Shown one piece after another: positions 17,333-63,800 of a stretch of DNA of 64,000 nt (positions are counted from its first letter, which is position 1; each line of letters opens with the position of its first letter). Below the pieces are notes generated by a model, which was given only the letters and a program-made list of their open reading frames with translations, did no database searches and was not told the origin of the DNA. This stretch comes from Selaginella moellendorffii (taxonomy: Eukaryota; Plantae; Lycopodiophyta), in the NCBI RefSeq assembly GCF_000143415.4, contig NW_003314305.1:805709-869708 (forward strand), read 5' to 3'. The position numbers and the translations under genes are program-made.

Positions 17333-17792
17333 TATTAAACATTAGAATGATAGAGCCAAAAAAGATTAAATTGTGATGTGTGAATAAAGTATGGCAAACT
17401 ATTCATTCAGAGATCATTTACATGCAATTTTGTAACTAAACTGTAAAAACATACAATTTTGATATACAAAGCACCAAGAAATAGGGCTTTCGTAAAAACT
17501 GAAGTTTCTTTATGTTGTATAATCAGATGACGTGGCAGAATACATTGATATATCACCAATATCTTCTGTGACTGCTACTGTGACTGAGCAAATGTAGTTT
17601 TATTTATTTCATAGAATGGAATTAAAGTGAAATTATAATTACAAATCAGCATAAGTAAACAAAAAAGAGGGAAAAACGAAGGCTTTGAAACGGTTATTGT
17701 TCAGTGGCCAATCAACTGACATTTCAACTGAAGCTGCGGAAGCTGGTCGCGCAAAATGCCGGGAGTCGGATGAAAAGACAAAGTAAAAAAAG

Positions 17793-36950: not shown

Positions 36951-39900
36951 TTGACCCATGTTGACAACAAAGTTAAAGTTAGCACTTAACAATGACAATT
37001 GAATTTTAGTGTTTCATTCATTTTTTCTTTTTAAAGTATCTGAAATTCAAGTCATAATAGAGTGGAATTGGAGTGACATTTGTGGCTCCACTTCAAATCC
37101 ACTCTAATAATATATTCATTCATATAATAATATAAAAGTAAAATATAATATAATATTCTCTTTATATATTGATTATATTGTGTGGAATATAGAATGGAAT
37201 ACAGAAATATGCATATTAATTAGCCCAAAAACCCTAATTTATATATAAAGTGAGTTCTAAATTAAAATCAACCTGACAGCTATTAAAATCTCACTATGCC
37301 AATATTGTATATAGCATCATATCCATACACTTTGACCTTACATCATTCTCTTCTCTTGGAATATGTAGGTGGTATCAGTTGTTAGGAAGCATTTTAGCCA
37401 TTGCACATATATAATTTTTAGAGAATTGATTTGTTGGATGTTATACCAAACCTTATAAACTTGCAGTTCAACTTGAGATAATACCTAATATGGTCCCTTC
37501 CATTGAATAAAGAGTTTGTTTAACAAACCATATAAGTAACACTAAATCATTTACTTTGTACTCCACATGTGAATGATGATAGGAGTTGTAGCACCATTGT
37601 TGTCTCACTTGTATATGGCCCAAGTGTTCAACAAACTCTACTCAGGCAAGTGAAAAAATACTTGTTAAATATTAATCCCAAGATTTAGCATCGATAGTTC
37701 ATGGTAATCATGAAGGAAAACTCAACTTTGTTAGCAATATTGAATCATGATCACATTTGAGTTTATATGGTTAAGTACCAACAAAACGTTATACCTCTAT
37801 GACATACCCATACTGAAGAAACGGCAAATAACCATCCCAATTTGAATGTTAAAAGTTCATGTATTTTATGATCATCCCTTTGAAGGTCTGAACAAACCAT
37901 TCCACCAAGCCATTTATCTAAGCACTCATGAAAGTGTGGTGTATCCCCAGTTAAAATGTTAAAATATAAAAAATATTAACCATAAATATAGAACCACCAT
38001 CCAAGAGAATCCACTCTAGATAGGAATGTTGGAATACCACTTAATTAAGGAGGAATTACCTAACAGTAGTCAATGTCACGCTAGCAAAAGCACCAACTTC
38101 CATGTAGCGAGTTAGTAGTTGGAAGCAATAATGACGTACAATGGAATATGGAAAAAGCCCTATCAAATAAAATGCCACAAACTTAAATAGATAGGAAATT
38201 ACATTTTAACCATCCTTTTGCAACATAAAGGGGAGTATTATAAACTTGGCACTAAACACAACTATGCACATATTAGATAATATCATGTTGCATTTTTAGT
38301 TAATAGAAAGACTTACATAACTTCTCAGTCACACATTGATGTCCTATATGCCCATCTAGAATAAAAGAGTCATAATAAAATATTGAAGTCACCATCAACT
38401 ATAAATGATCATTAAGATCATTCCCAATAAAATAAAGAAAGTATTTCTCAAGATTATATTAAGAATATAAATGCCAAAATAGCAACTCATTAGCAAGTGA
38501 TGCAACCCCTCACGAAGCCTTTAGATCCATAGTTTAATCTTTTAAACTTCATAAACCTTATCAATAGAAGGTAAACTTTGTGAACATTAAACATCACGTA
38601 CAACAATTGCCAATGTCACAAAATCCTCAAAAAAGTCCATTAGCTAAAATAACCAAATCATTAAGAATAGGAGATAAACTTGAGAAAGCTTTAGAGCCCA
38701 CCAAATAGTATAACCAACTAAATTCTTCCACTTGAATAACAAAATAATTGCAACATGATCATCTTCTAGTAATGTTTTAGAACTATGCAAATATGCATAA
38801 AGCTTTTTGAAACTCTAAACTACTATTAAACACTCCACCTTTGTTAATTATAATGTAGGGTTGATGTGTATAATGAGATGGTATTGACCAAGTACACTCA
38901 AGCTCCTTTACATTAACATATTTCCAAGACTGCATGGAAAAAGAAAAGTCGAGTGTAATTAGGGTAGTCCAAAACTAGAGGAGTCATTAACAACTCTTTA
39001 AGATGTATAAATTTCTACTCATAGTTCATAAACTAAATAAAAGATGATGTTGACAATTTCAACAATACTCACAATAGTGTAGTACAAAAAAAGATGATCA
39101 ATAAAACGATTAAAATATTGCATTTTGCCTAAGAAGTATTATACATCATTTACACACTTCGAGGTAAGGAACTTTTGAACAACCATAAGTTTGTTAGGAT
39201 CAATTTGCAAACCTTCATAAGAAATATAATACTCAAAATAAGTTATGTCTTTGGACCAAACACGCACTTTGATTATTTTAGGTTTAAACTAGTTTCCCAT
39301 AGTCGATCTAACATTTCAAGAACATCATAGATATGTCTTTTATGTTCTTTAAAGTGGATCAATACATCATTGATGAAGTTAGTAATCACCTCTGACATAT
39401 CTCAAAGAACTTCATTCATCATCCACTAAAAAGATGCTAGAGCATTTTTCAAATTGAACAACATCATCAATAACTTATATAAAGTAAATAGTGTATGCAA
39501 AATAGTCTTAGGAATATCATCTTTGGCCATTAACACTTGTTAGTACCCAAAACAATATATAACTTGGTGAACTTATGACAATTTAGAACAATTTAGAACA
39601 ATTTAGAAGATTAGCCATATGAGGAAAAAGGTACACATTCAGGATAGTCATCTTGTTTAATAAATGATAGTTAATATAAAAGCAAATACTCCTATCAAAC
39701 TTTGTCACAAGATAAAGTTTACACATCTAAAGACTCCAAAAGTTTTAAATAACACCCTTTTCTAACATCTCCTTGACGTTCCCATGTAAAATCTTGATCT
39801 CCTTGGGTGATTGACACTAAATAAAAACTTTGGCTGGATAAGCATTCCCATTTAGAATAAAATGATGTTATAAGCAACTAAAGGGAATAACTTGAGAAAT

Positions 39901-41529
39901 GGTATATAAGGGTTTAAATTGCCACGAATGTGATTATAGGTATCAAAAATTACCTATCGGCTAGTCCTTTTAGATATTCTTTCTTTATTGCCATAGCAGG
40001 GGGAGATTGGTTGGACCCTTCATCAATCCCTCTTATACTAGTGGAGTTAATTGGGCATTTCGAGTGTACTTAGGCTAGACGAGCATAAGGATGGAATTCC
40101 TAAGTGCTATTAGCTAAATATACTTAGCCCGGTAAGGAATTCTTATCTCATTGTGTCTTGCACTAGTTAATGACAAAAACCTCTATATATTAAGACTAGT
40201 CCCTCAATATCACTAAATGATAGTTTACTGTGTTTGCCAAATATCCTCGCTATTATGCCCTTTATATTGGTCTTGTTTAGTTCTATTAGTTATTTATGAA
40301 AAGCATCTAGATTTGCTAATTTGATATATCTATAAAATATAAAGATTATCCTAAACATAATGGTGTTAGTCTTGCATCGAAATTTGCAATCTAATACCAT
40401 TCTATATTTAATAAGTTTCAAACTTGTCATAGAAACTAACTCTTGATACGAAGGGTGGCTCAAGATGAAAGCTCAAAGTGTGCCTTCTTCAAGGGAAGGG
40501 GGGCTAGGGGGGGTTCTAAATGTATAGTAGGGTGTAAGTGACTAATTTTTCCATTCTACTTTAGTCACTTAACCACACCTCCGACCACTTGGAGGAGTCT
40601 AACTCACAACCTCCATAAGTCCTATTTCAGGCTTGGGCTTGCTAGCTCTGAAAACGGCATCCCCGCTACTTAACTTTTGCACTTGGTCCAAGTGCTCCAC
40701 GTGTCCGGTCCCATGACCAACACCCCAAGGTACCACCGACATATCAGCCCGTTACGCTAGGCTATACCCATTCACCTTGGTCACATCAGTGGTTCATCAC
40801 CACCTACATTGCAATCTCGTCTCTCCAAGACTGGGCCATCCATCCATGAGTGGTCATCCCAGATCCACTCTTTAGCATCCTTAGGATGCCCATAGACATG
40901 GGGAACAACCTTCCCTAGTATCTCCTTTCCGGTCCCCGCCAAGTCCCTCCCTGTCCATGGCCGTGTTCACCAACACAGCCACTAGGTCAAGGCCCACAGG
41001 CCTGACCACCAAGTCCAACTGTCCTCTGGGACTTCCTCACTATGTGACTGTGTCCTTTGTCACCACACCAGAGGGCTACTCCTCTTCCTTTCCACAGTCT
41101 GGGACTTTGGGGCAACATTTCGGAACACCATGGCCCTACACAGGTCTCGTGGGTACTCTCCTCGCCTTCTGCCTTTGGGTGCTCTAGCCATAGGCTTAGA
41201 GCGAGGTTCCGTTGAGCCACACCAGGTATCCAAGTAGGTAGTGCCACCCACACTTGGACTGGGAGCATCGGCCAATCGATCTCCCGAGGGAACTAGAGCC
41301 GGCTCTTGAACACTTCACCAAGCTACCCCGCTTGTCGGTCCGTATTCATTCTAGTCTTGGACTTCCCAGTGGTCAGTTCATCACCCAACACTGGGTCTGG
41401 CCTTCCTGGGCCAAATTGGCCTTTCCTGGCCAAACTGACTCCACTGCAGTCCTCCCCCTTACTATACTTTTGGAGCTCACCAAACCCCCCAGGGTCTGGG
41501 AGACGAACACTTTGGGCTTTCACCCTCTC

Positions 41530-42042
41530 AGACTCGAACTCGGACTCGGACTCAGACTCGGACTCAGACTCGGACTCGGACTTGGACTCGGACTTGGACT
41601 CGGGCTCGGCCTCGGGCTCAGCCTCGATCCCGGTCCCGGTCCTGGTCTCGGTCCCGGTCCCGGTCCCGGTCCCAATCTCGGTCCCGGTCTCAGTCCCAGT
41701 CTCGGTCTTGACCTCGGACTCCATCTCGGGTCCTTCTCGGACTCCATCTCAGGTCCATCTCGGACTCCATCTCGGACTCCGTCTCGGTCCATCTCGGACT
41801 CCATCTCGGGTCCATCTCGGACTCCATCTTGGGTCCATCTTGGACTCCATCTCGGGTCCATCTCGGACTCCATCTCGGGTCCATGTCGGACTCCATCTCG
41901 GACTCCATCTCGGGTCCATCTTGGACTCCATCTCGGGTCCATCTCGGACTCCATCTCGGGTCCATGTCGGACTCCATCTCGTACTCCATCTCGGTCCATC
42001 TTGGACTCCATCTCAGACTCCACCTCGGACTCCAACTCGGGT
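41530..42042. repeat. Compound tandem array in the D 3' LTR (6-mers GACTCG, GGTCCC; 11/12-mers GGACTCCATCTC, GGGTCCATCTC)
   Basis: Periodicity is directly visible. Confidence 0.95.
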
Positions 42043-45000
42043 TGTAATTGATTTTTTCTGGGATGGAATTCTTGTTAATTAAAGCATATTACTGTGGATT
42101 ACAATTAGTTACACAACACTACCAGTAAATCAATCTAGTAATATATGTTAGAAATTAACATAGAAAATAACATTATTCTATTCATAATGAGATTTAAAGT
42201 ATCCACCTCGGACTCCAACTCGGGTCCATCTCGAACACTTCCACGTGTCATGTGTTGGTCCTTTGGGGTCCCTTTTTGGAGCCTCACTTATCGCTTGCTT
42301 CATGCTCGTTCCTTGAGCACTCCATTGGGAGTTCCACTCCCGCTTTCAACCTTTCAAGTCGGAGCCCTTTAGTCCAAACATGTTATGCTCGTTTGGCTTT
42401 TGCTTCAGCCACTACCACGTGGCACCCTTTCCGGCTCCACTTTGGGGCCTAGGGATTTTGTGTCTCACAACTCCACCACCCATAGACGAAGTTCGATGTC
42501 CTCATCGAACGATAAACTATTTTATAAAGTAATACCAACTTGTATTACCATTTCCATCCTTGGCCCCTCGCCAATATTCGTCAATAGTTTGATATTGAAG
42601 GCTTGCCATGCTTTGCCCATCCTCTAAGGAGCATAGTCTCTCCAACATAGAGACTCATTCGGCCACCTGGGGTGGTTTGCTCCCTTTTTTTGATTCAGTT
42701 CTCGCTAAACTCGTTAGAGACACCTTCTCTAACTCAATTCCACTACTCATTCTCGAGTAATCCCAACTTCTATTGACATAACCAATTCACCTTGGAACTT
42801 TTAATTTTGACTTCTCAAAGTCAATTTCTTTGGTGTCTTTGACACCTTTCACTGCACATATTGTGCAACTTCACTTCCCAGCCTAGGAAGCTCCCCACTT
42901 GAGGGCGCCATCGTCCTCCTTTCTATTTTATGCCACTTTTGGCACTAAGTTCCAACTATCGTAAGTTGTGCTAGAGCTATCCACGGCCCTATCCTTTGGC
43001 TACTTCGCTGCTCCCTCCCTTGGAGCTTTCACATTTACCAACTTGGAGCATTTGGGAATCCATCCTTGGAAGCACACTTCCTTTCTCACAATCCGTTAGC
43101 ATCCAACACATTAGTGTTTTATGCCTAACTTTGCCATTTGGATTCCTTCCAATGAACTCCATGACCCACACTTGGCCACTAGTCTTTTGCTTTTATCCAT
43201 TGATTGTTGCACTGAGCAACATAGGATCACTACCTCCATTCTCGAGGTATCTTTTTGGTTCCATGGCAAGGGCTCTACTTTGCTAAGTCTAGCGGGTGCT
43301 CACCCTTAGTAGGTCTCTTTAGCAATTTTTGCTATGGGCTTCGTCCACGGCCTAACATTGCGACCCTTCCATGGGTCTCTCCCCGAGACTACTTTCTTGG
43401 ACTTATTGTACCATTGTATTGGCACAATTGATTTCCCTTTAGGTGTCCTTCTCACTTGGTCACCTCGACCAAGTCACACCATTATCAATAGTTCAAATCA
43501 ACACTTTGAACTGGGAATCATATTCCTTAACCCAAACAAAGACCTTGTCTTTGTTTAGCCACAAGATCACATGGTGATCTCATCTTGACCCCTTAACAGG
43601 TCTACCAATAAGAACTAAGTCTTCCAAACCCTTTTAAATTGTTGACTATGACCCCGGGGGCATCCCCCACACTTGGCGGTGTGCCTTCCGGCCAAGGATC
43701 CATAGCAACTGAGACTGGGTGTCCCCATCTCATTCACCACGTCCTTGGTGCCTTTTGCACCAAGGTGTTCAAGTTAGATATGCCGAGCTTTCACTCTAAG
43801 CAATCTAACCGTGCATCACGACTCCGAGGCATCCCTCGCTTGGCAGTGTGCCTAAACCAGTCTCCTCACTAAGAGCCCATGACCACCGAAATATGAGTGT
43901 CCTCATATTCCAAACCATCACCATGCCCTAGTGATTTGGGACTCGAACCCAAGCACTAGAGGGTCGGGACTCGAACCCAACCTTCATATATACATCTACG
44001 GATGGCATCACCCCGGATGCCTGGCGTGACTCCCCACGCCGGTGCACCAACTTATATTTAAAGCATGTTATAGATCATCACTTAGGAACCTAGTTCCTTT
44101 GCACTACCAAGGCTTCTCACTTGACAAGTCTGTGATCATGCATGGACTCCTCCATGCTTGGCCCCATGGGCCACCCTTTTGAAGTTAACTCCTTCAACTA
44201 GGGTATTTGTTCCCCTGACTTGCCAATCTCACTTAGCAAGTCATCCGACCACTGTAACATGGTTCATGCAAAAGCGTGAAAGTCCTTAACCATCGACTTT
44301 CGTTCAAAGCCCTCTCTTTGAACACTCAGGAACTACTTCCCTAACCTTGATAACCTCGCCTTTTGGCAAACTTCAAGACCACACTTCTATTGCACCACTC
44401 TAATTTCGTGCGCTCTATAAACTATTTACACTTGGATGTCTAAGTACTTATCTACCTAGGGGAACGTTCAAGGAACTTTGTTCCTTAGCTTGCTAAGGTC
44501 TCTCCATTCGCAAGCTTTCCAATTACCATATAGTCTAACTGGATAATCCCATGCTTTAGACCTTCCATGGCATCCCGATCGCTAGTAACAATATGCTTAA
44601 GCACCCACTTGATTCTCCACTCCCAACTTCCATAACCACCCTTGGTCATGCCTGTCAATTCCTATGGTTCGGTTCTATCCCTTTACTACTTGCCTTTTGG
44701 CCTCATACATTTCCTTCGGTTATCCTCCTTCAAACTAGGAAGATAGCTTTGCACTTTCTACCATGCCTTGGCAAGTATTCATAGGGATGAACCTACCTGA
44801 CAGCCTAGGGAGTGGTTCCTCAATCCGAGTTTGCTCACTTTGTAATCCAACACACTAGGATCACCGTTGCTACTTATGGGCCTTTATATGCCCATCACTA
44901 ACCTTGCCAAAATCCCTCCTTGGCTTTGTCTAATTTGGGTAGATGGACTTCTCCTGTCTCCACAACCTTGGACATTTAAATAGCACCTCTTATCCTTCAT

Positions 45001-47509
45001 TCACTAGGGACTTTGTCCCTTGGGCATTATCCATTGCCCTCATGACACCAAATACCCCCTTCTGGTGTTCTAGAGTGTTTGGGTGTCCTAATGATGGCCT
45101 CTCTGACAATGAGCATTCCCTTTTCGACATTGACTTACTATGTCGCAACATAAACAATTTATCCCTTATAAGGGTATATCGAACTTCCTTATCCCAATAA
45201 GAAGTCTTAGGTAGTTGCCTTTTACCAGTTTATGAATTATTTTGCACCTTTTGCTTAGTTGCCTTATAGTTGTCAAGTCCTACAACTTATTGCTAGTGCT
45301 TCCACACCTCCATCATTATCTGGGTCACCACACTCTAACCGCATGCCTTCCAGCTTAGGCTATGCTATTCCCATTTCCATTGGGATTCTTTTGGAAGGGG
45401 TTCTCATGAACCCACCAACTTGACCTCAAGGCAGCATGCCTTGGCACCTTCGGTGTCTCCACACCATCAGCTCCACAAGCTTACCTTTATGACACTTCTT
45501 ACTTATGTCCAGGTATTTTTGCCAAGACTAATATAGTTGTCTCTTATGCCAATTATCCATTAGCACTGCACCATAGAGTTCATGCACAACTTTGTGTCAA
45601 AGTTATTTTCTTCCGGGAAACTCTTTCCCACAACTTTAGCATGGCACCTTCTGCCATCAATGAGATACATACTGCTCTCATGCTTGGATCTCAAGATCCT
45701 CCCCATCCTTTGTGGGGCACCACACACCTCAGTCCAAATGCTTTCCTCAAGCCCTTAGGATTATTCTTTGACTCTATTGGAGTCATTCAACCTTTTGGAC
45801 TTTGTTAATTCGACGACCCATGAGGTCCTACTTTTGAGGTGTTAGCTCACTAGAATACAACTCCTTGTATTCATATCCTACTCACAAGGACCATCTTTTG
45901 CAAGTGTTACTCTGACACCTGATTTGTTCTCTAGGGGCAACTTTTTTGCCCCTTAGGACCACTTGTCCATATGATGAGAATACCAACTCATCCTCTGAAT
46001 ACACCCTCAATTCCTTGGGTTGTTCCAGCATTTATTAGAGGTAGCTCCGGCTACCATTTCAAGGACTTGTGTCCTTTTCTGTATTTGACCTCCCGCGGTC
46101 ATTACTTGTAGTCTCACATTCATGAGCACCAACTTCAACTATATGAGGATAATCTTGTGACTCCTTTATTGCTTTGGAGTCTCTATCTTTCTCGTGATCC
46201 TGACTATAGTTGTTTACCACAACTACATTAGCCAGTTGGCTACGTTAAACACTCATCTGGATCACATCCTTAACTCTCTGAGGAAACTCTTATACTGTTT
46301 CTAAGATCCCAAAGTCGTTCCCTTACTGGTCCTTTTCTATCCACCACATTGCGCCCAAGTTCACGCATGAACTTGGGTAGAGAGCCATGTCCTCATGACA
46401 TGCTACTCCTCAAGGATAGGCCCACTCCCAGGACCTTCTAATGCCAATATCAATGGTGATATACTTGAGCACCAATAAAAGTCGGACTAAGGAACAACTC
46501 CAATACCAAATTGTAAGCGACTAATTTTTCCATTCTACTTTAGTCATTTAACCACACCTCCGACCACTTGGAGGAGTCTAACTCACAACCTCCATAAGTC
46601 CTATTTCGGGCTTGGGCTTGCTGGCCCCGAGAACAGCATCCCTACCACTCAATTTTTGCACTTGGTCCAAGTGCTCCACGTGTCCGGTCCCATGACCAAC
46701 ACCCCAAGGTACCACCAACATATTAGCCCGTTACGCTAGGCCATGCCCATTCACCTTGGTCACATTGGTGGTTCATCACCACCTACATTGCAATCCCGTC
46801 TCTCCAAGACTGGGCCATCTGTCCATGAGTGGTCATCCTAGATCCACCCTTAGCATCCTTAGGATGCCCGCAGACATGGGGAACAGCCTTCCCCAATATC
46901 TCCTTTCCGGTCCCTGCCAAGTCCCTCCCTGTCCATGGCCGTGTTCACCAACACAGCCACTGGGTCAAGGCCCACAGGCCTGACCACCAAGTCCAACTGT
47001 CCTTTGGGACTTCCTCACTATGTGACTGTGTCCTTTGTCACCACACCAGAGGGTTACTCCTTTTCCTTTCCACAGTCTAGGACTTTGGGGCAACATTTCG
47101 GAACACCGTGGCCTTACACAGGCCTTGTGGGTACTCTCCTCGCCTTCTGCTTTTGGGTGCTCTAGCCATGGGCTTAGAGCGAGGTTCCGTTGAGCCACAC
47201 TAGGTATCCAAGTAAGTAGTGCCACCCACACTTGGACTGGGAGCATTGGCCAATCGATCTCCCGGGGGAACTAGAGCTGGCTCTTGAACACTTCCCCAAG
47301 CTACCCCGCTTGTCGGTCCGTATTCATTCTAGTCTTGGACTTCCCAGTGGTCAGTTCATCACCCAACATTGGGTTTGGCCCTCTTGGGCCAAATTGGCCT
47401 TTCTTGGCCAAACTGGCTCCACTGCAGTCCTCCCCCTTACTATACTTTTGGAGCTCACCAAACCCCCCAAGGTTTGGGAGATAAACGTTTTGGGCTTTCA
47501 CTCTCTCAA

Positions 47510-48036
47510 ACTCGAACTCGGATTCGGACTCGAACTCAGACTCGGACTCGGACTTGGACTCAGACTCGAACTCGAGCTCGGGCTCGGTCTCAGCCTCGGC
47601 CTCGGTCCCGGTCCCGGTCCCGGTCCCGGTCTTGTCTCGGTCTCGGTCTCAGTCCCGGTCTCAGTCTTGATCTCGGACTCCATCTCGGGTCCTTCTCGGA
47701 CTCCATCTCAGATTCCATCTCGGGTCCATCTCGAACTCCATCTCGAACTCCATCTCGGTCCATCTCGGACTCCATCTCAGACTCCATCTTAGGTCCATCT
47801 CGGACTCCATCTCGGGTTCATCTCGGACTCCATCTCGGGTCCATCTTGGACTCCATTTCGGGTCCATCTCGGACTCCATCTCGGACTCCATCTCGGTCCA
47901 TCTCGTACTCCATCTCAGGTCCATCTCGGACTCCATCTTGGACTCCACCTCAGACTCCAACTCGGGTCCATCTTGGACTCCATCTCGGACTCCATCTCGG
48001 ACTCCATCTTGGACTCCAACTCGGGTCCATCTCGGA
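47510..48036. repeat. Compound tandem array in the D 5' LTR
   Basis: Same units, different arrangement. Confidence 0.95.
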
Positions 48037-50597
48037 CACTTCCATGTGTCATGTGTTGGTCCTTTTGGGTCCCTTTTTGGAGCCTCACTTATTGCTCGCT
48101 TCATGCTCGTTCCTTGAGCACTCCGTTGGGAGTTCCACTCCCGCTCTCAACCTTTCAAGTCGGAGCCTTTTAGTCCAAACGTGTTACACTCGTTTGGCTT
48201 TCGCTTCGGCCACTACCACGTGGCACCCTTTCCGGCTCCACTTTGGGGCCTAGGGATTTTGTGTCTCACATAGGGATAATGGGTATGTTAGGCATGGTCG
48301 ACCAACCTAAAGCATAGTTTACCTCTCTTTTGTATACCTATCTTTGTTTTGCATTTGGCTTGAGTTTAAGCTTAAGTTTCATTCTATGCTAGCTAATTGA
48401 GTACCCATATCCTTGCATTAAGCCACGGGTATGTTGAAATAGTGCTAAACTTTGTTTAGCTCCATTTTGCGTACTAATTCTGACAATGGGATATTGAATG
48501 CTCTAAGATTGTTCTAATGTCACTCCATGCTCCTGTCCTTTTGCTTCTTAGCTACAAGTTTGGGAGTTTGGCTTTGTTCCTTTATTCAATAGCCCAATGC
48601 TCTAAAACTCGAGTTTCACTTTACTATCCTTGGACATGTGGCATATGATATATGGCATGTGGAGGGTTTAGGTTTTGTTTTATGGTTATCCTATAATAAA
48701 TCACCATAGAATACAAAGTGAAAACTATGTATGCTACATAAATATAAAGGGAAAGGGCCCATAAATAAAAATGCACCTTTTTTTCAATCAATTAATAGTC
48801 TTAAGATACTTGGGGTTAAGTGTCCTTGGGTTTGAATAATACTGGGCCAGATGACTTCCCAAAAAATCCAAACTCAATTCTTGGGTTAGATAACCTCCCA
48901 GAAAGTCTAAACTTAAGAGCTTACAGACACATTACAATCTTATAATGGAAGTAGAGGTAAAAGAAAAAAGATGAAGTAGAATAAAAAATAGAGTAATAGA
49001 TATAAGGAAGTATGAGATACAAAGGAGAAGCCTCAAAGTCACACTTCGCATGATTGCACTACAACTAATTTATATTAAGGATCAAATTTAAGATCTTCTA
49101 TATGCACAACTAGATTCACTTCATCCCATAATCTATTTCATCCTATGCACATGCATGTATATAGCTATAATTTATACCAAGGATCAAACTTAAGATTTCC
49201 CACACTCACAAATAGATCTGCTTCATCCCATACACATATATATGTATAGCCATTGCTATAAAAAATGAAGACTGACTCTACCACACAACAAAATTGTAGA
49301 TGGCAACATGTAGCAATAGGCTAAGCAATAAAAAATAAACTTGAGCCTGTATCACCTAATATATAGGGAATTAAAGACCTTTTGTTATAATAACAAGCTT
49401 TGAAAGTACACATTTGATGAATTAGTGCCAAATGAACCCCTTGATAGTACTCTCGAAAGAAAGATGAAAGTGTTAATGACTTATTTGTGCAAGAACCTTT
49501 TACTATTTATATAACTCTTATTTTTCAGGAAGAATCTTTGTATTCAAGACCTTCCACTATAATAGAACGAACAAGATATTGTTGACACCAAGGCCTTCAC
49601 CTAGGAAATGGAGGATGTCAATCTAAAAAATATCGACAACACTAATATGTGTAGTTAACTCATTACATGCCCAATAATAGATATCATGGCCACAACCACA
49701 TCTTTACCCTCGTCTTTGAACATGAACAATAGCAGCACTAACCTCTATTAAAACAAGACTATGTCCCATATGAAGTGGAGTTAAATGACATATAACAAAA
49801 AGTGGAAAAGGTAATATTTCATAATGTTGTATCAGTTGAAAAACATTATTAATGGTGGTTGGAGCAAGTGCATGCACAAGTCTTATAAAATCTACTCCTA
49901 TATATTAAACTTTTGACGAAGTAAGAGGCTTTAGAAGCAAATGCCAAATTGCATCACTATTTGATGAAGATAATGCAATTGTTGGAAGGTGTCATCACAA
50001 ATGTTAGTATATCCAAATATGTGCTTCAAGACGTCTGAAAGAATGCTCCAATCTACACGAGTGGCTGCACTCAAACCATTACACCATTATAATGCCATCC
50101 CTTGGAGAACGTGAAAAACTTATGCAAACACCAAGAATAATCCCAAGAATGATGGTAGCAATCACCATAAAATGATTAAACTAATAGTATATATCATCTC
50201 TAAGATTCCTACAAAAAAACTTTAGCCAAACACAAGGGTGCAATCTCATAAATTTGGACTTTCATCTATATTTGAACCTCTATAGATTGCCACGTGTCAC
50301 ATACCACATGCCACATGTCCAAAGGACAGCGGAGTGGAACCCGAGTTTCAAAGCCTTGTGTAAGCTCATAAGTTTGGACTTCCTAGGAAGTCACATAGCC
50401 CAATATTATTCAAACTCAAGGACGCTTAACCCTAGATATCCCAAGACCCTTAACCGATTGGAAAAGGGGGTGCATTTTTATTCATAAGCCCTTTCCTTCT
50501 ATATTTAAACCCCAATGGATCGTCTTTCGAGTTGTTCTCTTTAGTTGTTTATAATCTACCATACTTCCCTGCAAGTTTACGCCCTCGTGAACGGAAA

Positions 50598-52338
50598 TGT
50601 GAGACACAAAATCCCTAGGCCCCAAAGTGGAGCCGGAGGGGTGCCATGTGGTAGTGGCCGAAGCGAAAGCCAAACGAGCATAACACGTTTGGACTAAAAG
50701 CTCCGCTTTGAAAGGTCGAGAGCGGGAGTGGAACTCCCAACGAAGTGCTCGAGGAACAAGCACAAAGAGAGCAATAAGCGAGGCTCCAAAAAGGGACCCA
50801 ACAAGACCAACAGATGACACGTGGAAGTGTCCGAGATGGACCCGAGCTGGAGTCCGAAGTGGAGTCCGAGAAGGACCCCGAGATGGAGTCCGAGGTGGAG
50901 TCCAAGGTGGACCCGAGATGGACCCGAGATGGAGTCCGAGATGGAGTCCGAAATGGACCCGAGATGGAGTCCGAGATGGACCCGAGATGGAGTTCGAGAT
51001 GGAGTCCAAGATGGAGTCCGAGGTGGAGTCCGAGATGGAGTCCGAGGTGGAGTCCGAGATGGAGTCCGAGATGGACCCGAGATGGACCCGAGATGGAGTC
51101 CGAGATGGAGTCCGAGATGGACCCGAGATGGAGTCCGAAGTCGAGATCGGGACCAAGACCGAGATCGAGACCGAGACCGAGACCGAGATCGGGACCGAGA
51201 CCGAGATCGGGACCGAGACCGAGACTGAGGCCGAGGCCGAGTCCAAGTCCGAGTCCGAATCCGAGTCCGAGTCCGAGTCCGAGTCCGAGTCCGAGTCCGA
51301 GGCCGAGTCCGAGTTCGAGTCTGAGGGGGTGAAAACCCAAAGCGTTCGTCTCCCAGACCTTGGGGGGTTTGGTGAGCTCCAAAAGTATAGTAGGGGGAGG
51401 ACTGCAGTGGAGCCAGTTTGGCCAAGAAAGGCCAGTTTGGCCAGGAAAGGCCAGTTTGGCCCAGGAAGGCCAGACCCAGTGTTGGGTGATGAGCTGCCCA
51501 CTGGGAAGTCCAAGACTAGAGTGAACACAGACCGACAAGCGGGGTAGCTTGGTGAAGTGTTCAAGAGCTGGCTCTAGTTCCCCCGGGAGATCAATTGGCC
51601 GATGCTCCCAGTCCAAGTGTGGGTGGCACTACCTACTTGGATACCTGGTGTGGCTCAACGAAACCTCGCTCTAAGCCCATGGCTAGAGCACCCAAAGTTA
51701 GAAGGCAAGAAGAGTACCCACAAGGCCCGTGTAGGGCCACGGTGTTCCGAAATGTTGCCCCAAAGTCCCAGACTGTGGAAAGGAAGAGGAGTAGCCCTCT
51801 AGTGTGGTGACAAGGGACACAGTCACACAGTAAGGAAGTCTGAGAGGACAGTTTGACTTAGTGGTCGGGCCTGTGGGCCTTGATCTAGTGGCAGTGTTGG
51901 TGAACACGGCCATGGACAGAAAGGGACTTGGTGGGGACCAGAAAGGAGATATTGGGGAAGGCTATTTCCCATGTCTGCAGGCATCCTAATGATGCTAAGG
52001 AGTGGATCTGGGATGACCACTCATGGATGGATAGCCCAGTCTTGGAGAGACGGGATTGCAATGCAGGTGGTGTTGAACCACTGATGTGACCAAGGTGATT
52101 GGGCATGGCCTAGCATAATGAGCTAGTATGTTGGTGGTGCCTTGGGGTGTCGGTCAAGGGATCGGACATGTGGAGCACTTGGACCAGGTGCAAAAGTTGA
52201 GTGGCGTGGATGCCATTCGCGGGGCTAGCAAGCCCCAAGTTCTGAATGGGACTTATGGAGGTTGTGAATGAGACTCCTCCAAGTGGTCGGAGGTGCGGTT
52301 AAGTGACTAAAGTAGAATAGAAAAATTAGTCGCTTACA
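50598..52338 (+). mobile_element. Solo LTR of family D
   Basis: TGTGAG...CTTACA, 1741 bp, perfect TSD GGAAA (50593-50597 / 52339-52343). Confidence 0.95.
50830..51322. repeat. Compound tandem array in the D solo LTR
   Basis: GAGATGGAGTCC, GAGATGGACCC, GAGACC and GAGTCC units. Confidence 0.95.
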
Positions 52339-52521
52339 GGAAATTAAGAGTCGCAACTCTCCCGAGAGCCCCGCTCTCTTGATACCTTACCCCTCAGGTC
52401 AAGCCCAATGGGAGCAAATTGGACCAGCTAGATGTCAATCAACATATGGTGTGATTCTTTTAGCCAACTAACAGAGTCGGACCAAAGACCCCTATGATAC
52501 TAAATGTAAACTCCTAAGTTT

Positions 52522-52576
52522 GGACTTCTTGGGAAATCACCTGACCCAGTATTATTCAAACCCAAGAACGCTTAAC
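52522..52576 (-). promoter_or_regulatory. 5S rRNA-like Pol III internal control region (A box, IE, C box) in the TRIM LTR; further copies at 50376-50430 (-) and 48815-48869 (+)
   Basis: GTTAAGCGTTCTTGGGTTTGAATAATACTGGGTCAGGTGATTTCCCAAGAAGTCC aligns without gaps to plant 5S rRNA nt ~51-105. About 40/55 identical by hand count against a consensus recalled from memory; most mismatches are transitions. Confidence 0.8.
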
Positions 52577-55570
52577 CCTAGATATCCTAAAACTTAATTG
52601 ATCGGAAAAGGGGATGCACTTTTATTCATGGGCCTTTTCCCTCTATATTTGAACCCTAATGGATCGTCTCTCAAGTCGTTCTCTTTGGTTCCTTACACCT
52701 TGGGCCATTGAACAAAAGAACAAAGCTAAACTCCTAAGTATGGAGCTAAGGAGTGTTGGAACTGGATCACGGAGCAACTCTTGAGCATATAACCCAAAGA
52801 GTGAAGGGACAGGAGTATGGAGCGACTTAGAACAATCCTAGAGCATTTAATATCCCAATGCCAAAACTAACATACAAAACAGAGCCAAATGGAGTTTGGT
52901 GTTATTTCAGTATACCGATGGTCTAAGATGAGGATATGGCTACTCCACCAGCTAACATGGGGTGGAGTTTGGGCTTATATCCAAGCCAGATGCAAAACAA
53001 AGACAGACATGCAAGAGGGAGTTAAACTATGCCTCAGGTTGGTTGACCATGCCTAACTTACCCACTATCCCTACTATACATTTGGAACTCTCTATAGCCC
53101 CCTCTTGAAGAACACACGCTTTGGGCTTTCACCCCAAGCCTCCCTTAGTATCAGGAGTTAGTAAACTCAAAACTTATTAAATATAGAATGTCTTTAGATT
53201 GCGAATTTGGACATGAGACGAACACTCTCTACATTCCGTAGATATGCCAAATGAGCAAATCTAACACTTTCTATAAATAACATTTAGGACCAAAATGAAA
53301 CTAACACAAAGGGAGGATGTTTAGCAAACACAGTAAACTATCATTTAGTGAATATTAAGAGACCAAACTCAATATCATGGGGGTTTTTAATACTAGCAAG
53401 TGCAAGCTAATGACACAAATTTCTTAAACCATGCCGAATATGCTCAACAAAAAATACATAAGGTTTCTACCTTATATTTATCCAATTTAAATGCATGGTT
53501 ATTGACCAATTTCTTAACTAACTCAAGTGGGAACTAATAACGAATCCAACAAGACCAACCTCTTGCCATTGTAGTAGTAAGGAAAGAGTGTCCGTAAAGA
53601 CTGGCCAACAGATAACTTTCAATACCCAAGGTCACATTTGCAACAGCTTCTTAAGTCATTCTCTTTAATTACTTACAATCCACCATGCTTCCCTGCAAAT
53701 CAATCTTAACATATGGTGTGATTCTTCTCAGGTTCCTAGCTGCCAAACTGGATCACTAAATATTAATCTCAACATGTGGTATGATTCCCTTAACAAACTA
53801 GTAAAATCATACTTAAGATATCAATCTCAACATATAGTGATTCACCTAGCCAACCAATAGAGTCAAACTTAAGACCATTCTAATACCAAATGTAAGCTTC
53901 TAAATTTAAACTTCCCAAAAAATCATATAACCCAGTACTAAAAATGTTTAACCCTAAGTATCCCAAGACCCTTAACCAATTAGAAAAATATATACACTCT
54001 TGCTTATAAGCCCTTTCCTTCTATATCTAAATTTTTATAGATTATCTTTTGAATTATTCTTTTTAATTGCTTACAAAAGGTTAGCAATAAGAGTAAGAGG
54101 TGTTGTACCACACACTATAAATGCCACCATCAATTGCACTAACTATTGCTCTAAAGTCAAAGAAAAAAGAGGTTATTACTCTACTATGAAAATGAACAAA
54201 AAGAAAAAAAGCAAAAGAGAAGAATTTGAAAAAGTTACAAGGAAAGTGAGATTTAGACAATGCAAAAACTAAATCTAAACTTTAATCCCAAATCTAAGCA
54301 CTTCTAAAAAACAATCAAAGATATCTCCATCAATATGAGTGTATAGAATATAGAAATAGAATATAAAATATACATATTAATTAGCCTAAAAAATCTACTT
54401 TATATACAAGAGCAAGTGGTCTGAATTGAAACCAATTTAATAGCTATTAAAATCGCATTATGCAATTACTAGTATACAATATCATAACCATACAATTAGA
54501 CCTCACAATTTTTAATTTACTTTCTCTGCTAGGAGTAAAGCACTCCTAGCAGACCTTTATTATGGAGAAACAAACTGGATTTTTTTTATTAAATTTTTTT
54601 ATTCTAATAATGGTGGTGATTTTTTGTCATTAGTTCATCATATGTCTCAATAAAATAGGATTTCCAAATGTAAAACCAAACCATTCTTAACATGGTTCTT
54701 TCAATCCTTTTACAAGCATCTATGCCATTTTTGCTTTGGTCATAAGTTATAGCCATTGTCATTTACACTTTGACTCGTATTTCTACATTTTTCTTAGGAT
54801 CACATGATATGCCTTATGAGATTTGGATGGGTTATTTTTCTTCTCCTAGTCACTTTTGAGTTTTGGTTGTAAAGTAGTCCAAATCCAGGGTATTCATTGG
54901 GTATCATAAGCATATCAGAGGCTATAAGGTTTATAATTTTCACACTTGCACTTCTATTTCACACATGATTATGAGCCAGATAAGATTTTATAGAATATTC
55001 ATATGCATATTTCACCATCTACACAGATGAATCATACAAGAAGAAAAAAACACTTACAAATTCACCAATTGGAATAACAAAAAAAAATGAACAAAAGAAA
55101 ATTCCATTAACTTTGGGATGGTTATTATAAAGTAGACCTTTGAATGGAAGCAGATGAATGAATTAGCATTTTTGTTGATGTGGGGGGTGTTAGTCTATAC
55201 AAGGAAGAATCTGGTTCCCTTGGTGCTACTTGGAACTGATGAAGCCCAAGCCAGAGCAGTTACACTTGAGCTCGAGAGACGAGGACTACCTTTATGTATT
55301 CTCAAAGCATGGGATCACATCCAGCAACGGTAAGTTGTTTGTTATTGTCAATAACACATTGCCTCTTGTGACAGAATCCACGAGCTCAGGTTTAATCAAG
55401 AGCTGTGATCAAACAGTTGACGAAGCAAATCAGGTCAAATGTGAGATCAAATGTGGTCAAAAGCAACAGAGAAGGATGAAGGCGCAAGAGCGAACAAATT
55501 GACAAGACAACTTAGGTACTCTTTAATTGTTTCCCAACTATTAAGATCAAGCGAATGTCTTAGGGACTCA

Positions 55571-58500
55571 TTACTTCTTGGACAACTCCAAACCATCCAT
55601 CCACAGAGTACGAATCTTCCGGTAGCTCACACCAGAGTAAACCGGTTGTTTACTTGGCTCTAGCACCCACGTCAAGATCTTGCCGTCATTCTGGTCCTCA
55701 ATGTCAACATCCACGGCAGTTTCCTCCACTCTAACCTGCTGTTTCGGGGCTTTCAGACCACGGGCATCAGTATACCATGTGTAGGTCCAGGACAGAAGCG
55801 GGGAGAGCGCCTTGATAAACAGAAAAGTCATCAGCATGCACAGCAATTCCCCTGGCACCGATGTGGCTATCATAACAAAGTTGTAGTGGACCAAAGGTGG
55901 CAAGACTGAAAAGCCTGCACATGCAAAAGCCACAAGAACAAAGCAAATCGAGCCAACCAGCAGGCTTGCCGCGAGGAGCAGTGTCCACCTCAGCCTGTCA
56001 ATCACACCCAAGTCAAACACCTGGGGCAGTGGGAGGATGCCTGCAACTCCAGCCAGTGCGCTTGCCATCGCAAAGAAGAAGGAGAGGCTGTTGAAGATCC
56101 AGAATGCTTTCACTCCTGGATAGTTGATGGCCACATACTTGAGGTCATCCTCCTGCTGGCCGTGCTTCGTGAGCTTCAGGGAGTATTGCAGAGGTGGGCT
56201 CAAGGATCCAGCGTATGTCACACCTGCAATCAGAGCTGCCCCCACCAATATGGCATTGAGGGCATCTACAAACAGTTCCCGGTCCTTGTGCAAGTTGTCC
56301 AGGTACTGTTCCCACTTCAGGCTGTTGAGCAGGAAGCTGTTTTTCCAGGATTTTGGTGCATACCAATATGGTGCCTTTCCAAAGTTGTCAAATATGCCAA
56401 CTCTACAATTCCTTGTATGAAGGATAGAGAGGGTGGTAGAGGTCTCCTCAAAGATGGTGGACCAATGCAAGGCAGTCCTGCCTGTGTGAACCCCCTTGTC
56501 ATTTGGGTACTCCAGCATCCCTCCAATCTTCCTGCTTTCTAAAAGATCTTCAACTTTCTTTACAAGAGCTTTGCTCTTGTTCTCCTCTTGGTTCGATCTT
56601 CCACTGTCAGTACTTTCTGCTGTGCTTTTCTCTTTCAGCCTTGTAAACCAGTAAGCCAGAGGGATGTCCTCCACCAAGTTAGAGATGCTCATGTGGACCA
56701 AATGACTACTTCTGTGGACCCTGTTTAGATTCTCGTTTGATTCCTGGTCAGACCAACGAGCACTTGGCAGCAGGACTGACTTGATCAGATCGCCAAGCCC
56801 CCATCGACTGCTTGCTGTAGCTAGGCTCGTGGCAAACCCGGATTTCCACACATCTTCACTAAGGAAACCAATCTTGAAAGCATCCACCAAAAACTGGCTG
56901 CTAGAAGCATATCTATTTAGTTGCTCTTTGCCACGACGATCTAGTTGGCTTAAGATCTGCAAGGCCCTGAACATTGGCTCTACATCGCTCGCTCGTGTTC
57001 TTCCCCTTGTTGTGTTCTTGGCATAGAATGCGGCCCATTCCAATATTCGTGATTCCTTGACTATTTTTAAAATGTAATCCTTAGCCTGCTCGTCCGATGA
57101 GAATTTAATGAGAAGTGATGCAAGCTTTTCATTTGTGTCACTATCTCCCAAAGCGGCAATGCAAGCCAATAATCCAGGCTCAAGTTTCCTGTGCTGCGCC
57201 TGAATACGGTTTAATACTTTCCAACACACCAAATCCGGCTCATGTGAGCGATGGGCTTCAATTAAATGAAACACCTGTTGCCACCTTTCAAAGTCCACAT
57301 TCCCATTAAACAATCTTACACTTCTTTCCAAGTGAGAGTCGACAAGCCAAGTATACTTTTCAGATCCTCCAATAACAGCCCAATGCCATGGCATAAGTCC
57401 TTCAACGGAATCCTCAGCAGTCAAATCAGCATTCCTGTCTATCAACCATTTCCCTGCTTCCTCTTTATCATTCCAAGCTGCATAATGCAGCGGGGTCAAG
57501 CCAGTCTTTGTTGCCTTGCTGATTTCCAGCTTCTCCCCTAGCTTCTCCTCCAAGAGCTCAAGAACCTCAACCTTCCTACCTTTACCTCTACAAGCAAAGT
57601 GCAACATGCCAGTGCCCATGTTGTCAGTCTTGTTTATATCAGCTTTAAGCTCGAGCAAACGCTCAACCATTTTAGTGTTGCCTCCTGCAAATGCAATGTG
57701 CAAAGGTGTCTGCCCCATGTTGTTAGTGCAGTCTACGTCCCAAGGGTCCTCACCTTCCTGCAGTTTCTCCACCACCATGTTCAGAACCGCAACATCCTGT
57801 CCATAAGCTGCTACATGCAAAGAGGTCTCCCCTGTAAACCTGCTGTCCTTCTCAACCAGTAGCTGGGCAAGACGATTATGCTCGACGTCAAAGTGCCTAA
57901 ATAGAGGCTTCACCAGGTCCAGTTTCCCAATACAAAGGCAGCCATGCAAGACTAAAAGATGCCCAACCTCGGGAACTGTCAGCAATTGCATAAGCTCTTC
58001 AGAAATACCTGCTGGGTCGGTTGACAGTATTCTCTTGAGGACTTTCCTCATGATTCTCACCTGGAGAGGCTGACGCACCTTTGTCAACAGCATCAGTGGT
58101 GAAAAGCCAGCTTTGTTGAGTTTGTGAAGATTAGCACCCAGTTTTATCAACAAAAGACACATATTGCCACATCCTTCTGTCATAGCCACGTGAAGAGGCG
58201 TGTTGCCATCGTTGTTGACATACTGATCGGCGTCAAAGTTGGCTCCTAGCCGTTTAATCATATAGTTGAACGTGCCATCGTAGCACCAAAAGGCAGCTAC
58301 ATGAAGTGGTGTATTCCCATTGTTATCAGGCCTCACGATGTCATCAATGCTCGTCGGAAGTAAAGTTAGCAAACGGGCAACATTTGTTCCATCCACGAAT
58401 CTAGCTGCTATGTGCAAGGGTGTTTCTCCTTTGTTATTGCACAAGCCCACAGCTTTTAGCTTCTTCTTCTTGATTTGTTCAAGCAATACCCCAACAACCC

Positions 58501-59011
58501 CCGCAACGTTGCTAATAACAGCTGCATGAAGTGCAGTGTTGCCAAGCCCATCCTTTTTGAGGATGTCTCTGATGCTTCTGGGAAGTAAAGCCTTGACCAG
58601 TCTGAGATTCCCTCTCCTGCTTGCCAAATGGAGTGCAGTGGTGGCACCATGGTCATCAACGAGATTGTGGATATCCCAGCCATTTTCTATCATGTTCTTT
58701 ACTTTATCCTCGCAGCCGGGGTCACCCGGATTACCAAGGAGCGCTTCAAATGGTTCTGCACAAAATGAGGCACTTCAAAGCTAAGTATACACTTGTAAGA
58801 AGAGATCAAGAGCTCGAGAGACGAGATACCATCGAAATCTAGATCTTGCTTGGCTCCCTCCATTCTGGAAAGTGTGGATTGCAAGCTACTCATTATGTTT
58901 GTTAGTTTCTTGGATTGTTCTTCTGCACAACAAACGTTAAGCCATTTAATTCTTATGAGGCACATACATACCACCAGCAAATTCAGCGATATCCACATTC
59001 ATTGTTGTCAT
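55571..59011 (-). CDS. Ankyrin-repeat protein with C-terminal PGG-type transmembrane domain (ACD6/ITN1-like)
   Basis: Many GxT(A/P)LHxA repeats, then ALNAILVGAALIAGVTYAGSLSPP and AFWIFNSLSFFFAM with ~4 TM helices. Two short 5' exons join in frame (introns 58971-58923 and 58829-58756). Confidence 0.9.
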
Positions 59012-59485
59012 CTTAGCCGAGCTGACTTTGTATCGCTCCGCAGCCTCCACAAGAGCGACGCTAGGGTCGCCAACCGCCAGCACCAAATTCAGTAAGCACC
59101 AATCCTTCACAAGTTCCCACCACACTCGGAATGAGCGATGCCTAGCGTCGCCCACTGCTCCTCCCAATCTTCGGAGATTTAGGTCCAGCCACAATGCGAT
59201 TTTATACAAGCCCGAAAGGCAAGAAAGCTTCTACATCGAAGCATTCTGATGCACGCTAGCAAATTCACTTGGATTAACTCCTAGCGTAAATGGCAATGTT
59301 ACGCCGGTTAACTCGCTAGTCGCTCGTCTTCTTTAATTATGCGAGTCAACAGCGGTCAGCAGAGTTTGGGGCGGTTTCACCATGCTTATCAAAGAATATG
59401 CGAACTTTTACAAGTTGACATCGATCATGGGAAGAAAACAATGCTGACGTCTGGCTTTAATTATACCGGGTGGCCTTAGAATGAT

Positions 59486-62400: not shown

Positions 62401-63800
62401 ATCTTATCTAACTCGTACTTTAATCTTTGGATCGTGCCAAAACAAAACAAGATTTATCGAAAATTAGAAAAACGAAGTACTACCAGTTCAGCCAAGCTTG
62501 TCGCAGATGCATTCTTCTCAACACTGTGGAAGGCCACTCGGAAGAAAGAAAAAAATTATACCGGACAAACAGAGCCAGGAGTTTACTCTGCATGCTCGGA
62601 CAACTTGTACATATCTGCGAGGGCACCTTTCAATTGCTCCTCCTGATATGGTGATCAACATGAAGCAATTGTAAATGTAAATAATTAGGAAGTCAAAACG
62701 AGTAGCACCAAATGCCTGTTGTCTTCCTTCAGGACTTGGATGTCGTCTTCCAAACTAGACCTCGTCTGCAATCCTTTACGTGGCAAGATCATACAAGAGC
62801 GTAAGAACGATAAAGTAGGAAACCAAAGCAAGAGAATAAGCAAACCACCTGGAGATGCTCCGCATGAGCGTTCTCAATCAAGGAATTGGCCTCTCTGAGG
62901 CTTCCTTTCAGCATGGCCGTCTCTTTTGCTAGAGCTTCCCTTTCCTTGTAAACAACAGTCAGCCTGTTCTGAATGGCTAGTTTCTGAAAAAAAAGAAAAG
63001 AAAAAAACCATTGATAGGTGAAACTGGACCAGATCATTAAAATCTTACGTCGGTAGTCAAGTCGTATTGCAATGCATCATATTTTTGTTGAAGTGTAGAC
63101 ACCTTCTCTTTGTTCTCTACCTGCAAAGTATAAAAGTTTACAAATCGAATCAACTGACTAGCTTACCTTCAGCCGACTGATCTCATCTTTGTAATAAGCT
63201 CGAAGTTGCTGAGAAAATAATCAAACCGAACATAATATGGACCAAAACACGTGATTAAGCTCTCACATCCATCAGGTCTTTGTGTGAAGCCTCTTGCTTC
63301 ATTTGCTCTTCCTCTTGACGTTCAACCCGGGCCTGAAGTTCAGCCTCGTGCTTTTGCAAAAGAGCCTATCTCGCTCTTTCTTTCAATCCGTTCCTTTTCA
63401 ATCTGGCCAGTGAAAATCAAACAAAGACCAGCATGAAGTTGTCATTCGCACTTAGCAACCTTACCTCTTTTTCGTGCAAATGCTTTGCTTCTTCAAGCTC
63501 CTGAAAGCAAGCATTTAGCCAAATGAGAGCAATAAAAGAATCTTACACACATCTGAAAGATGGCTGATTGTTTCTAGTGTTGTTTGGAGCTCAAGAGCCC
63601 CTTAGATAAACCACGTGGGAAAACAGACTAACACTAAGTCATCCACTTTGTACTTCACAGGTGGACAATGATGGGAGTTGTAGTGCTATTGTTGTTCCAC
63701 TTGTACACGGCCTAAGTGTTCGGTAGACTTTGCTCAGACAAATGGAAGAATGCTCGTCAAATACTGATCCCATGATTTAGCATCAGCAGCTCGTGGCAAT
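59486..63800 (-). CDS. Large multi-exon coiled-coil protein, FAM184-like
   Basis: More than 20 short E/K/Q/L-rich exons. C-terminus ESKPEDVERITYLE...MLNREENYNKIFRSSPVV resembles the conserved FAM184 tail. Both ends approximate. Confidence 0.65.

Follow-up and report, generated by a model that had tools for sequence, protein, structure and literature searches.

A 64,000-nt stretch of Selaginella moellendorffii DNA (the window) carries an old cluster of nested, non-coding LTR retroelements, in which two solo LTRs of an uncharacterised family, E, lie inside Cassandra-type TRIM LTRs at nearly the same coordinate. This co-location probably arose through preference for, or survival in, DNA that already consisted of elements. 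A sequence-only reading of the window had suggested that E is a plant retroelement that homes to Pol III promoters. We consider it improbable that family E, perhaps with other Selaginella LTR families, prefers the predicted TFIIIB-binding zone upstream of the 5S-type promoter in Cassandra LTRs, and two insertions inside a pile-up of elements cannot show such homing.

Results

Self-comparison and profile scans find exactly two copies of family E in the window, E1 and E2, and nhmmer with a Cassandra LTR profile finds five Cassandra-type LTRs, a to e. The nest is made up of the following features, in order of position.

39866-39919, plus strand: Cassandra-type solo LTR a, 5' part (nhmmer Cassandra LTR profile; alignment to intact LTRs)
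39920-40532, plus strand: E1 solo LTR, 5' part (E1/E2 alignment from the first base; E profile match)
40533-48270, minus strand: family F non-coding LTR element (LARD-like), nested in E1
48271-48738, plus strand: E1 solo LTR, 3' part (CA end; opens with the right-hand 5-nt copy of the F TSD)
48739-48926, plus strand: Cassandra LTR a, 3' part (nhmmer profile; alignment to intact LTRs)
48927-50232, no strand: unclassified AT-rich spacer between two host LTRs
50233-50289, minus strand: Cassandra LTR d, 3' part, about nt 33-118 (nhmmer profile; alignment)
50353-50290, minus strand: E2 solo LTR, 3' part (alignment with E1)
50359-52697, minus strand: complete Cassandra TRIM-3, nested in E2 (TSD CAAGG)
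53645-52698, minus strand: E2 solo LTR, 5' part (alignment with E1; E profile match)
53646-53677, minus strand: Cassandra LTR d, 5' part, nt 1-32 (alignment to intact LTRs)
53678-54075, minus strand: rest of TRIM-2 (profile match; alignment)

E1 has the TG start and CA end of a solo LTR, is AT-rich in its 5' part (36% GC) and is divided by the 7.7-kb family F element. A perfect 5-bp target-site duplication, TAAAT, stands on both flanks: its left copy forms the last 5 nt of the 5' part of LTR a, and its right copy opens the 3' part, which also contains a 5S-like box A/C segment and a terminal duplication of ~45 nt. Aligned to intact LTRs, the two halves of LTR a abut exactly around E1 (nt 1 in the numbering of the sequence-only reading is position 39869), and this solo LTR has no recognisable TSD of its own. 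E2, which is divided by the whole of TRIM-3, can be aligned with E1 from base 1 at 73% identity. Its TG start is present and its 3' end is truncated, without the final ~76 nt found in E1; the flanks, GAAGC and GTGGC, match at 3 of 5 positions and give no clean TSD. The extra 3' tail of E1 was considered as a captured piece of Cassandra and rejected, given that local alignments scored no better than shuffles. The window holds no coding copy of E, the open frame common to E1 and E2 has no match in the protein word index, and an exact 22-mer of the most conserved E block has no match in metagenome contigs.

The host of E2, LTR d, is preceded by the family PPT and is therefore the 3' LTR of TRIM-2. 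The internal domain of this element (53890-53678) starts with a PBS-like sequence, and its strongly decayed 5' LTR, e (54075-53891), is 65% identical to LTR d. The ends of TRIM-2 match those of TRIM-3, which has the make-up of a miniature LTR element (TRIM): two short LTRs (b, 52697-52505, and c, 50553-50359; 193 and 195 nt, 84% identical, K 0.19), a PBS-like start, a purine tract and the TSD. Within the TRIM-3 internal domain lies a solo LTR of family F (50598-52338, TSD TTTCC). The host Cassandra copies are ancient and decayed. In the alignment of Cassandra-type LTRs, conservation is highest over box A, IE and box C, and the box A/C motifs can be read in these LTRs and are conserved. The likeness of these LTRs to 5S by Rfam is weak: the 5S_rRNA model scores only 15.8 bits on LTR b alone (E 0.84, cut-off 38), and no match in the window reaches the gathering cut-off.

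The F element inside E1 has LTRs at 40533-42469 and 46512-48270 that are 94% identical, a TAGGG TSD, and PBS-like and PPT-like sequences that place its sense on the minus strand. Its entry point is the exact end of the TATA-like motif GTATAGTAGGG, which is common to E and F LTRs. An open frame in the F LTR has no protein match; Rfam matches to SCARNA18 and others within F LTRs were weak and were discounted as chance-level. Host LTRs a and d stand tail to tail across the AT-rich spacer, which has a 102-bp tandem duplication inside it. We compared ~70 kb of S. moellendorffii DNA at four loci (L001-L004, on scaffolds GL377971.1, GL377609.1 and GL377567.1) that were reached via the neighbouring ankyrin gene family. 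These loci are paralogous or allelic gene copies, 94-96% identical; the retroelement nest is absent downstream of them, and this DNA holds one additional F copy, no Cassandra and no further copy of E.

E1 sits after nt 51 of LTR a and E2 after nt 32 of LTR d, in the same relative orientation. Host nt 33-51 are on the 5' side of E1 and on the 3' side of E2, and the two copies therefore stem from separate insertion events. The same arrangement led us to reject E1 and E2, each with its flanks, as copies of one composite unit; E1 and E2 as the two LTRs of one element were also rejected, because they are mutually inverted, each has its own host on both sides, and they are only 73% identical. Self-comparison, profile scans and alignment thus agree with the sequence-only reading, which had placed both E LTRs, co-oriented, inside TRIM LTRs at these two sites and had called them independent. 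Its description of the sites as 19 bp apart is correct in homologous LTR coordinates but not for a single LTR, since two different copies are involved.

The motif GTTAAGCG begins at nt 122 of intact LTR b and matches 5S positions 51-58, which gives a nominal predicted Pol III start near nt 72. Relative to this start, E1 and E2 lie at about -23 and -42, which agrees with the geometry proposed earlier (A box at ~nt 122, start at ~nt 72, insertions ~20 and ~40 bp upstream). The second host LTR had also been said to have lost its 5S segment, and the homology of LTR d does end at about nt 118, immediately ahead of box A. A TATA-like run lies ~20-25 nt upstream of the predicted start, with the E1 duplication inside it. 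Judged from these motifs, both insertions fall within a plausible TFIIIB zone upstream of a putative type-1 Pol III promoter. The window contains no tRNA genes and, by Rfam, no 5S genes.

The locus is a single intergenic nest. Each of its five recognisable insertions interrupted an older element: both E copies entered Cassandra, a Cassandra entered E2, and family F entered E1 once and Cassandra once. Nesting runs in both directions, with TRIM-3 inside E2 and E inside Cassandra. The ~8 kb of non-element intergenic DNA at the locus (30-33% GC) contains no insertion. We took as the test event that both E copies fall in Cassandra LTRs in the same orientation, within 19 nt of each other. Its chance is 1.2e-5 with the whole window as target, 4.2e-4 with the intergenic gap only, and 0.048 with pre-existing Cassandra DNA only, for n = 2 in a single window and uncorrected for the thousands of windows scanned.

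Discussion

Two members of family E each entered a different Cassandra-type TRIM LTR, in separate events, and were later reduced to solo LTRs; afterwards Cassandra entered E2 and F entered E1, and the Cassandra copy in E2 received the F solo LTR. The anatomy of the nest, the independence of the two E insertions and the nesting order are shown by the sequence, whereas the reason for their co-location is inferred. E most likely occurs in Cassandra twice because, at this locus, hardly any DNA other than that of resident elements takes up or retains insertions, and the resident elements would then have been mostly Cassandra. That the two sites agree to within 19 nt and in orientation would then be a modest coincidence. 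This explanation is supported by the five out of five insertions of element into element beside ~8 kb of non-element DNA that has none, by the chance of 0.048 when Cassandra is the only target, by the reciprocal nesting of TRIM-3 in E2, by the great age of the copies (E1/E2 identity, TRIM-3 K and TRIM-2 LTR identity) and by the Rfam 5S score of the host LTRs, which is far under the cut-off. It is also supported by published plant data in which LTR elements nest non-randomly, in particular regions of others (PMC6911290). The nests of Jedlicka et al. 2019 (PMC6911290) resemble the present one in having LTR elements within older LTR elements, 5-bp duplications, several layers and a non-random region, although their hosts are full-size elements and ours are miniature and non-coding. 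In that study nested insertions on the whole avoid LTRs, which are under-used as targets, whereas here both E copies sit in LTRs at a near-identical coordinate, and this speaks against the element-DNA explanation. So do the rarity of the coincidence under the wider targets (4e-4 for the gap and 1e-5 for the window) and the position of the E1 duplication in a TATA-like run, with both sites in the plausible TFIIIB zone.

Alternatively, the integrase of E might be tethered by TFIIIB/TFIIIC or Pol III on the 5S-type internal promoter of Cassandra LTRs and insert 20-45 nt upstream of the start, in the manner of Ty3 and DGLT-A at tRNA genes. These two, from Saccharomyces cerevisiae and Dictyostelium respectively, are Pol III-targeting Ty3/gypsy elements, with TFIIIB contact demonstrated for Ty3 (PMC5006619, PMC5911963). 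Like E by prediction, they insert a few tens of bases ahead of a Pol III unit and usually leave solo LTRs behind (PMC5006619, PMC5911963); the E distances are similar to the 13-33 bp upstream of tRNA genes reported for DGLT-A (PMC5006619). By this analogy the geometry of E would fit the product of a Ty3- or DGLT-A-like element, and two independent co-oriented sites at such distances from a start predicted from box A, the conservation of box A, IE and box C above the rest of the LTR, and the TATA-like run around E1 all point the same way. However, most copies of Ty3 and DGLT-A are at tRNA genes (PMC5006619, PMC5911963), whereas E is represented by two copies whose target is a 5S-like promoter inside another transposon. 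Neither E copy has a true Pol III gene nearby, as the window contains none; E is represented here by LTRs, with no integrase-coding region in the window; and its two sites, 19 nt apart, are more loosely spaced than those of Ty3. Pol III use of the Selaginella Cassandra is itself predicted from motifs, and with n = 2 the chance value is about 0.05 when elements are the only target space. The prior for Pol III targeting in plants is also low, given that a 2025 review of plant transposon localisation makes no mention of Pol III (PMC12477314). We therefore regard Pol III-directed integration of E as rather improbable.

A local hot zone that has nothing to do with Pol III could produce the same positions if the 5' third of the Cassandra LTR, or LTR promoter regions in general, were favoured by several LTR families through DNA shape, short palindromes, AT-rich TATA-like runs or nucleosome positioning. 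The sequence TTTAAA overlaps the target of E1, and CTTAAG adjoins that of E2; F entered E1 right at the end of a TATA-like motif, and a weak palindrome preference and a nucleosome-linked pattern have been published for plant LTR elements (PMC6911290). These motifs are short and were chosen post hoc, though, the palindromes are missing at the same positions of other LTR copies in the alignment, and the remaining three of the five nest insertions are not at such motifs, which leaves a hot zone unlikely in our judgement. It is very improbable that E cDNA was inserted into Cassandra cDNA inside a common virus-like particle before the composite entered the chromosome, so that co-packaging and not genomic targeting brought the two together. 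In favour of such a route, E, F and Cassandra are all non-coding and need borrowed proteins, but the solo LTR that hosts E1 has no recognisable TSD for its own insertion, E and Cassandra have no common termini or known common PBS, and the model does not predict a shared insertion position.

The hosts match Cassandra TRIMs, as described by Kalendar et al. 2008 and summarised in PMC10886601 and PMC10853983, in being miniature LTR elements with PBS and PPT and ~190-nt LTRs that carry a 5S-type box A, IE and box C. They differ in that their 5S likeness is limited to the promoter-bearing part (Rfam, 15.8 bits) and in that their genome is that of a lycophyte, whereas the known range of Cassandra in those papers is ferns and seed plants (PMC10886601, PMC10853983).

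We found no Pol III-targeting retrotransposon described for plants in the literature searched. In compact genomes such as those of yeasts and social amoebae, insertion at Pol III genes is a classic way for retrotransposons to reach a 'safe harbour'. The Selaginella genome is compact and gene-dense, so a similar selective pressure could apply. If E did home in this way, plants would have their first Pol III-directed LTR retrotransposon, one that lands safely in a compact genome by using the promoter that another transposon has borrowed; homing of one transposon to another's Pol III promoter would add a new twist. A single window cannot by itself carry that claim. With its exact junctions and a zone defined as nt 28-51 of the Cassandra LTR, it does make a genome-wide count straightforward, and it documents reciprocal nesting among three non-coding families.

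Nested elements in one intergenic gap

Self-comparison, junction sequences and profile scans show 39866-54075 to consist of several layers of non-coding LTR elements nested in one another, all within one intergenic gap between ordinary genes. Profile scans of the window recovered five LTRs (a to e) of one miniature Cassandra-type family and only two copies, E1 and E2, of LTR family E. In TRIM-2 and TRIM-3 alike, the 5' LTR is followed by a PBS-like sequence and the 3' LTR is preceded by the same purine tract.

Host elements and flanking genes (window positions)
14207-15076: gamma-glutamyltranspeptidase exon, flanking gene
39866-39919 and 48739-48926, plus strand: LTR a, solo
54075-53891: LTR e, 5' LTR of TRIM-2
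53677-53646 and 50289-50233: LTR d, 3' LTR of TRIM-2
52697-52505 and 50553-50359: LTRs b and c, of TRIM-3
55571-58693: ankyrin/PGG protein gene, flanking gene

LTR b has GTTAAGCG from nt 122 onwards and then a box C-like stretch, and on such motifs the Cassandra-type LTRs are predicted to bear a 5S-type internal promoter. We take GTTAAGCG to be positions 51-58 of plant 5S rRNA, which puts the nominal transcription start near LTR nt 72, in agreement with the sequence-only reading; a TATA-like run (LTR ~nt 47-55) precedes this start by 20-25 nt. The Rfam 5S model gave no match at the curated cut-off and, against LTR b alone, only 15.8 bits (E 0.84), with an alignment that covers the 3' two-thirds of 5S and is broken by a large gap within its 5' half. 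This weak, 3'-part match therefore argues for a Cassandra-like element in which the promoter portion of 5S is retained rather than the complete sequence. By structure and promoter motifs the host elements fit the Cassandra definition, their 5S likeness being weak by Rfam. LTR d stops at ~nt 118, just before box A, which bears out the earlier statement that the second host LTR had lost its 5S segment.

In the 48739-48926 part of LTR a, the segment from box C to the end is duplicated internally (~45 nt), so that profile positions 153-188 occur twice. Selaginella TRIMs are on record, and 5S sequences are reported from no TRIM family except Cassandra (PMC4717578), the known range of which is given as ferns and seed plants (PMC10886601). 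The stretch 50359-54075 adds a lycophyte with a TRIM bearing this predicted 5S promoter.

The layers of the nest and their divergences are as follows.

Insertions into E copies and TRIM-3, with target site duplications
Complete Cassandra TRIM-3: inside E2, CAAGG
7.7-kb non-coding element of family F: inside E1, exactly where the motif common to E and F ends, TAGGG
F solo LTR: internal domain of TRIM-3, TTTCC

Identity and K2P distance
F LTR pair: 94%, 0.06
TRIM-3 LTR pair: 84%, 0.19
E1 versus E2: 73%, 0.36
TRIM-2 LTR pair: about 65%, 0.53

These divergences give the order of the nest and its great age; TRIM-3 is younger than E2, and F is younger than E1. The targets of all five nest insertions were older element DNA; the ~8 kb of AT-rich non-element spacer received none. 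The anatomy is that of ordinary plant transposon nesting.

Between two host LTRs that face tail to tail lies an unclassified 1.3-kb AT-rich stretch (48927-50232) with a 102-bp tandem duplication at 49066-49232. It starts where LTR d breaks off, just short of box A, and could represent either one more insertion or the scar of a rearrangement.

Two separate insertions of family E

E1 (1076 nt) has TG...CA ends and a perfect TAAAT duplication on both sides, and the halves of LTR a abut exactly around it when aligned with intact LTRs. E2 (about 1012 nt) shares its first base with E1 and follows immediately on host nt 32; at its far end, homology to E1 stops ~76 nt before the end of E1, and host sequence continues from nt 32/33. 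No clean target site duplication is visible at E2 (GAAGC versus GTGGC), where the tail and the duplicate were probably lost together in one small deletion. Host nt 33-51 lie 5' of E1 and 3' of E2, and the two are therefore separate integrations; with small corrections, the claim of two independent, equally oriented insertions in Cassandra LTRs is upheld. The same placement rules out E1 and E2 as copies of one composite. In each copy the TG end faces the host LTR's 5' end. That this end is U3 is suggested by a 70-nt mid-LTR motif common with F, whose sense is fixed by its PBS and PPT; E would then be co-directional with the host 5S-type unit in both cases.

No further E copy was found in a DNA scan of metagenome contigs, protein searches with the E and F open frames gave no match, and ~70 kb of S. 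moellendorffii DNA around ankyrin paralogues held no E and no Cassandra, only one more F copy. The window itself has no tRNA gene, no 5S gene and no E coding sequence.

Coincidence or target choice

We consider it fairly probable that the co-location of E1 and E2, two independent old insertions, comes from element-into-element nesting plus coincidence. In simulations of two random insertions, both fell in a Cassandra LTR, in the same relative orientation and <=19 nt apart in LTR coordinates, with a probability of 1.2e-5 for the whole pre-insertion window, 4.2e-4 for the pre-insertion intergenic gap only and 0.048 for pre-existing Cassandra DNA only. The last target space is not far-fetched, because all five nest insertions hit older element DNA. 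The pair was, moreover, picked from thousands of windows, and the positional agreement, judged on this window alone, is suggestive at best.

Several observations point to more than coincidence. E hit LTRs twice, although nested plant insertions are reported on the whole to avoid them (PMC6911290), and E1 sits inside the TATA-like run. Relative to the predicted start the insertions are at about -23 and -42, close to the ~20 and ~40 bp upstream first proposed; TFIIIB would sit there, and the distances resemble those of DGLT-A, which precedes tRNA genes by 13-33 bp (PMC5006619). A local hot zone unrelated to Pol III might also bring two insertions together, and we regard it as rather unlikely. 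True Pol III-directed integration of E, established elsewhere for Ty1, Ty3, a Schizosaccharomyces japonicus element and several Dictyostelium families (PMC5911963, PMC4600332, PMC5006619), seems to us distinctly improbable; Pol III is absent from a 2025 review on where plant transposons are located (PMC12477314), so a plant case would be new. Integration before chromosomal entry is very improbable indeed.

Genomic setting and family F

The ankyrin protein of the window is 90-92% identical to S. moellendorffii proteins, and the flanking genes match the fetched S. moellendorffii scaffolds at 94-96%; on these identities the DNA is from a Selaginella, with S. moellendorffii as its nearest match. 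The ankyrin/PGG gene and its neighbour (55571-63593) form a tandemly repeated gene pair, found on GL377567.1 and GL377609.1 in the fetched paralogue loci L002, L003 and L004. Downstream of all these fetched copies, 94-96% identical to the window, the transposon nest is absent, so that the window is a further paralogue or stems from a different assembly.

The mid-LTR motif (~70 nt) common to E and F LTRs ends in TATA-like GTATAGTAGGG (nhmmer E 5e-9 to 1e-5); it may represent a promoter module shared by the two families or point to kinship between them.

Copies of the E/F motif
40471-40532: E1
53150-53080: E2
41457-41525, 47435-47501 and 51327-51395: F LTRs
17407-17476 and 23353-23422 of L002

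The large elements of family F (window 40533-48270; L002 16480-23448) are non-coding and LARD-like, with LTRs of 1.76-1.94 kb rich in 12- and 23-nt tandem repeats and an internal region of ~4 kb in which no open frame exceeds 96 aa. In its PBS-like sequence and its LTR ends (TGTGAG...CTTACA) the family is similar to Cassandra; the second copy is on scaffold GL377609.1, at a distance of 3 kb from an ankyrin paralogue.
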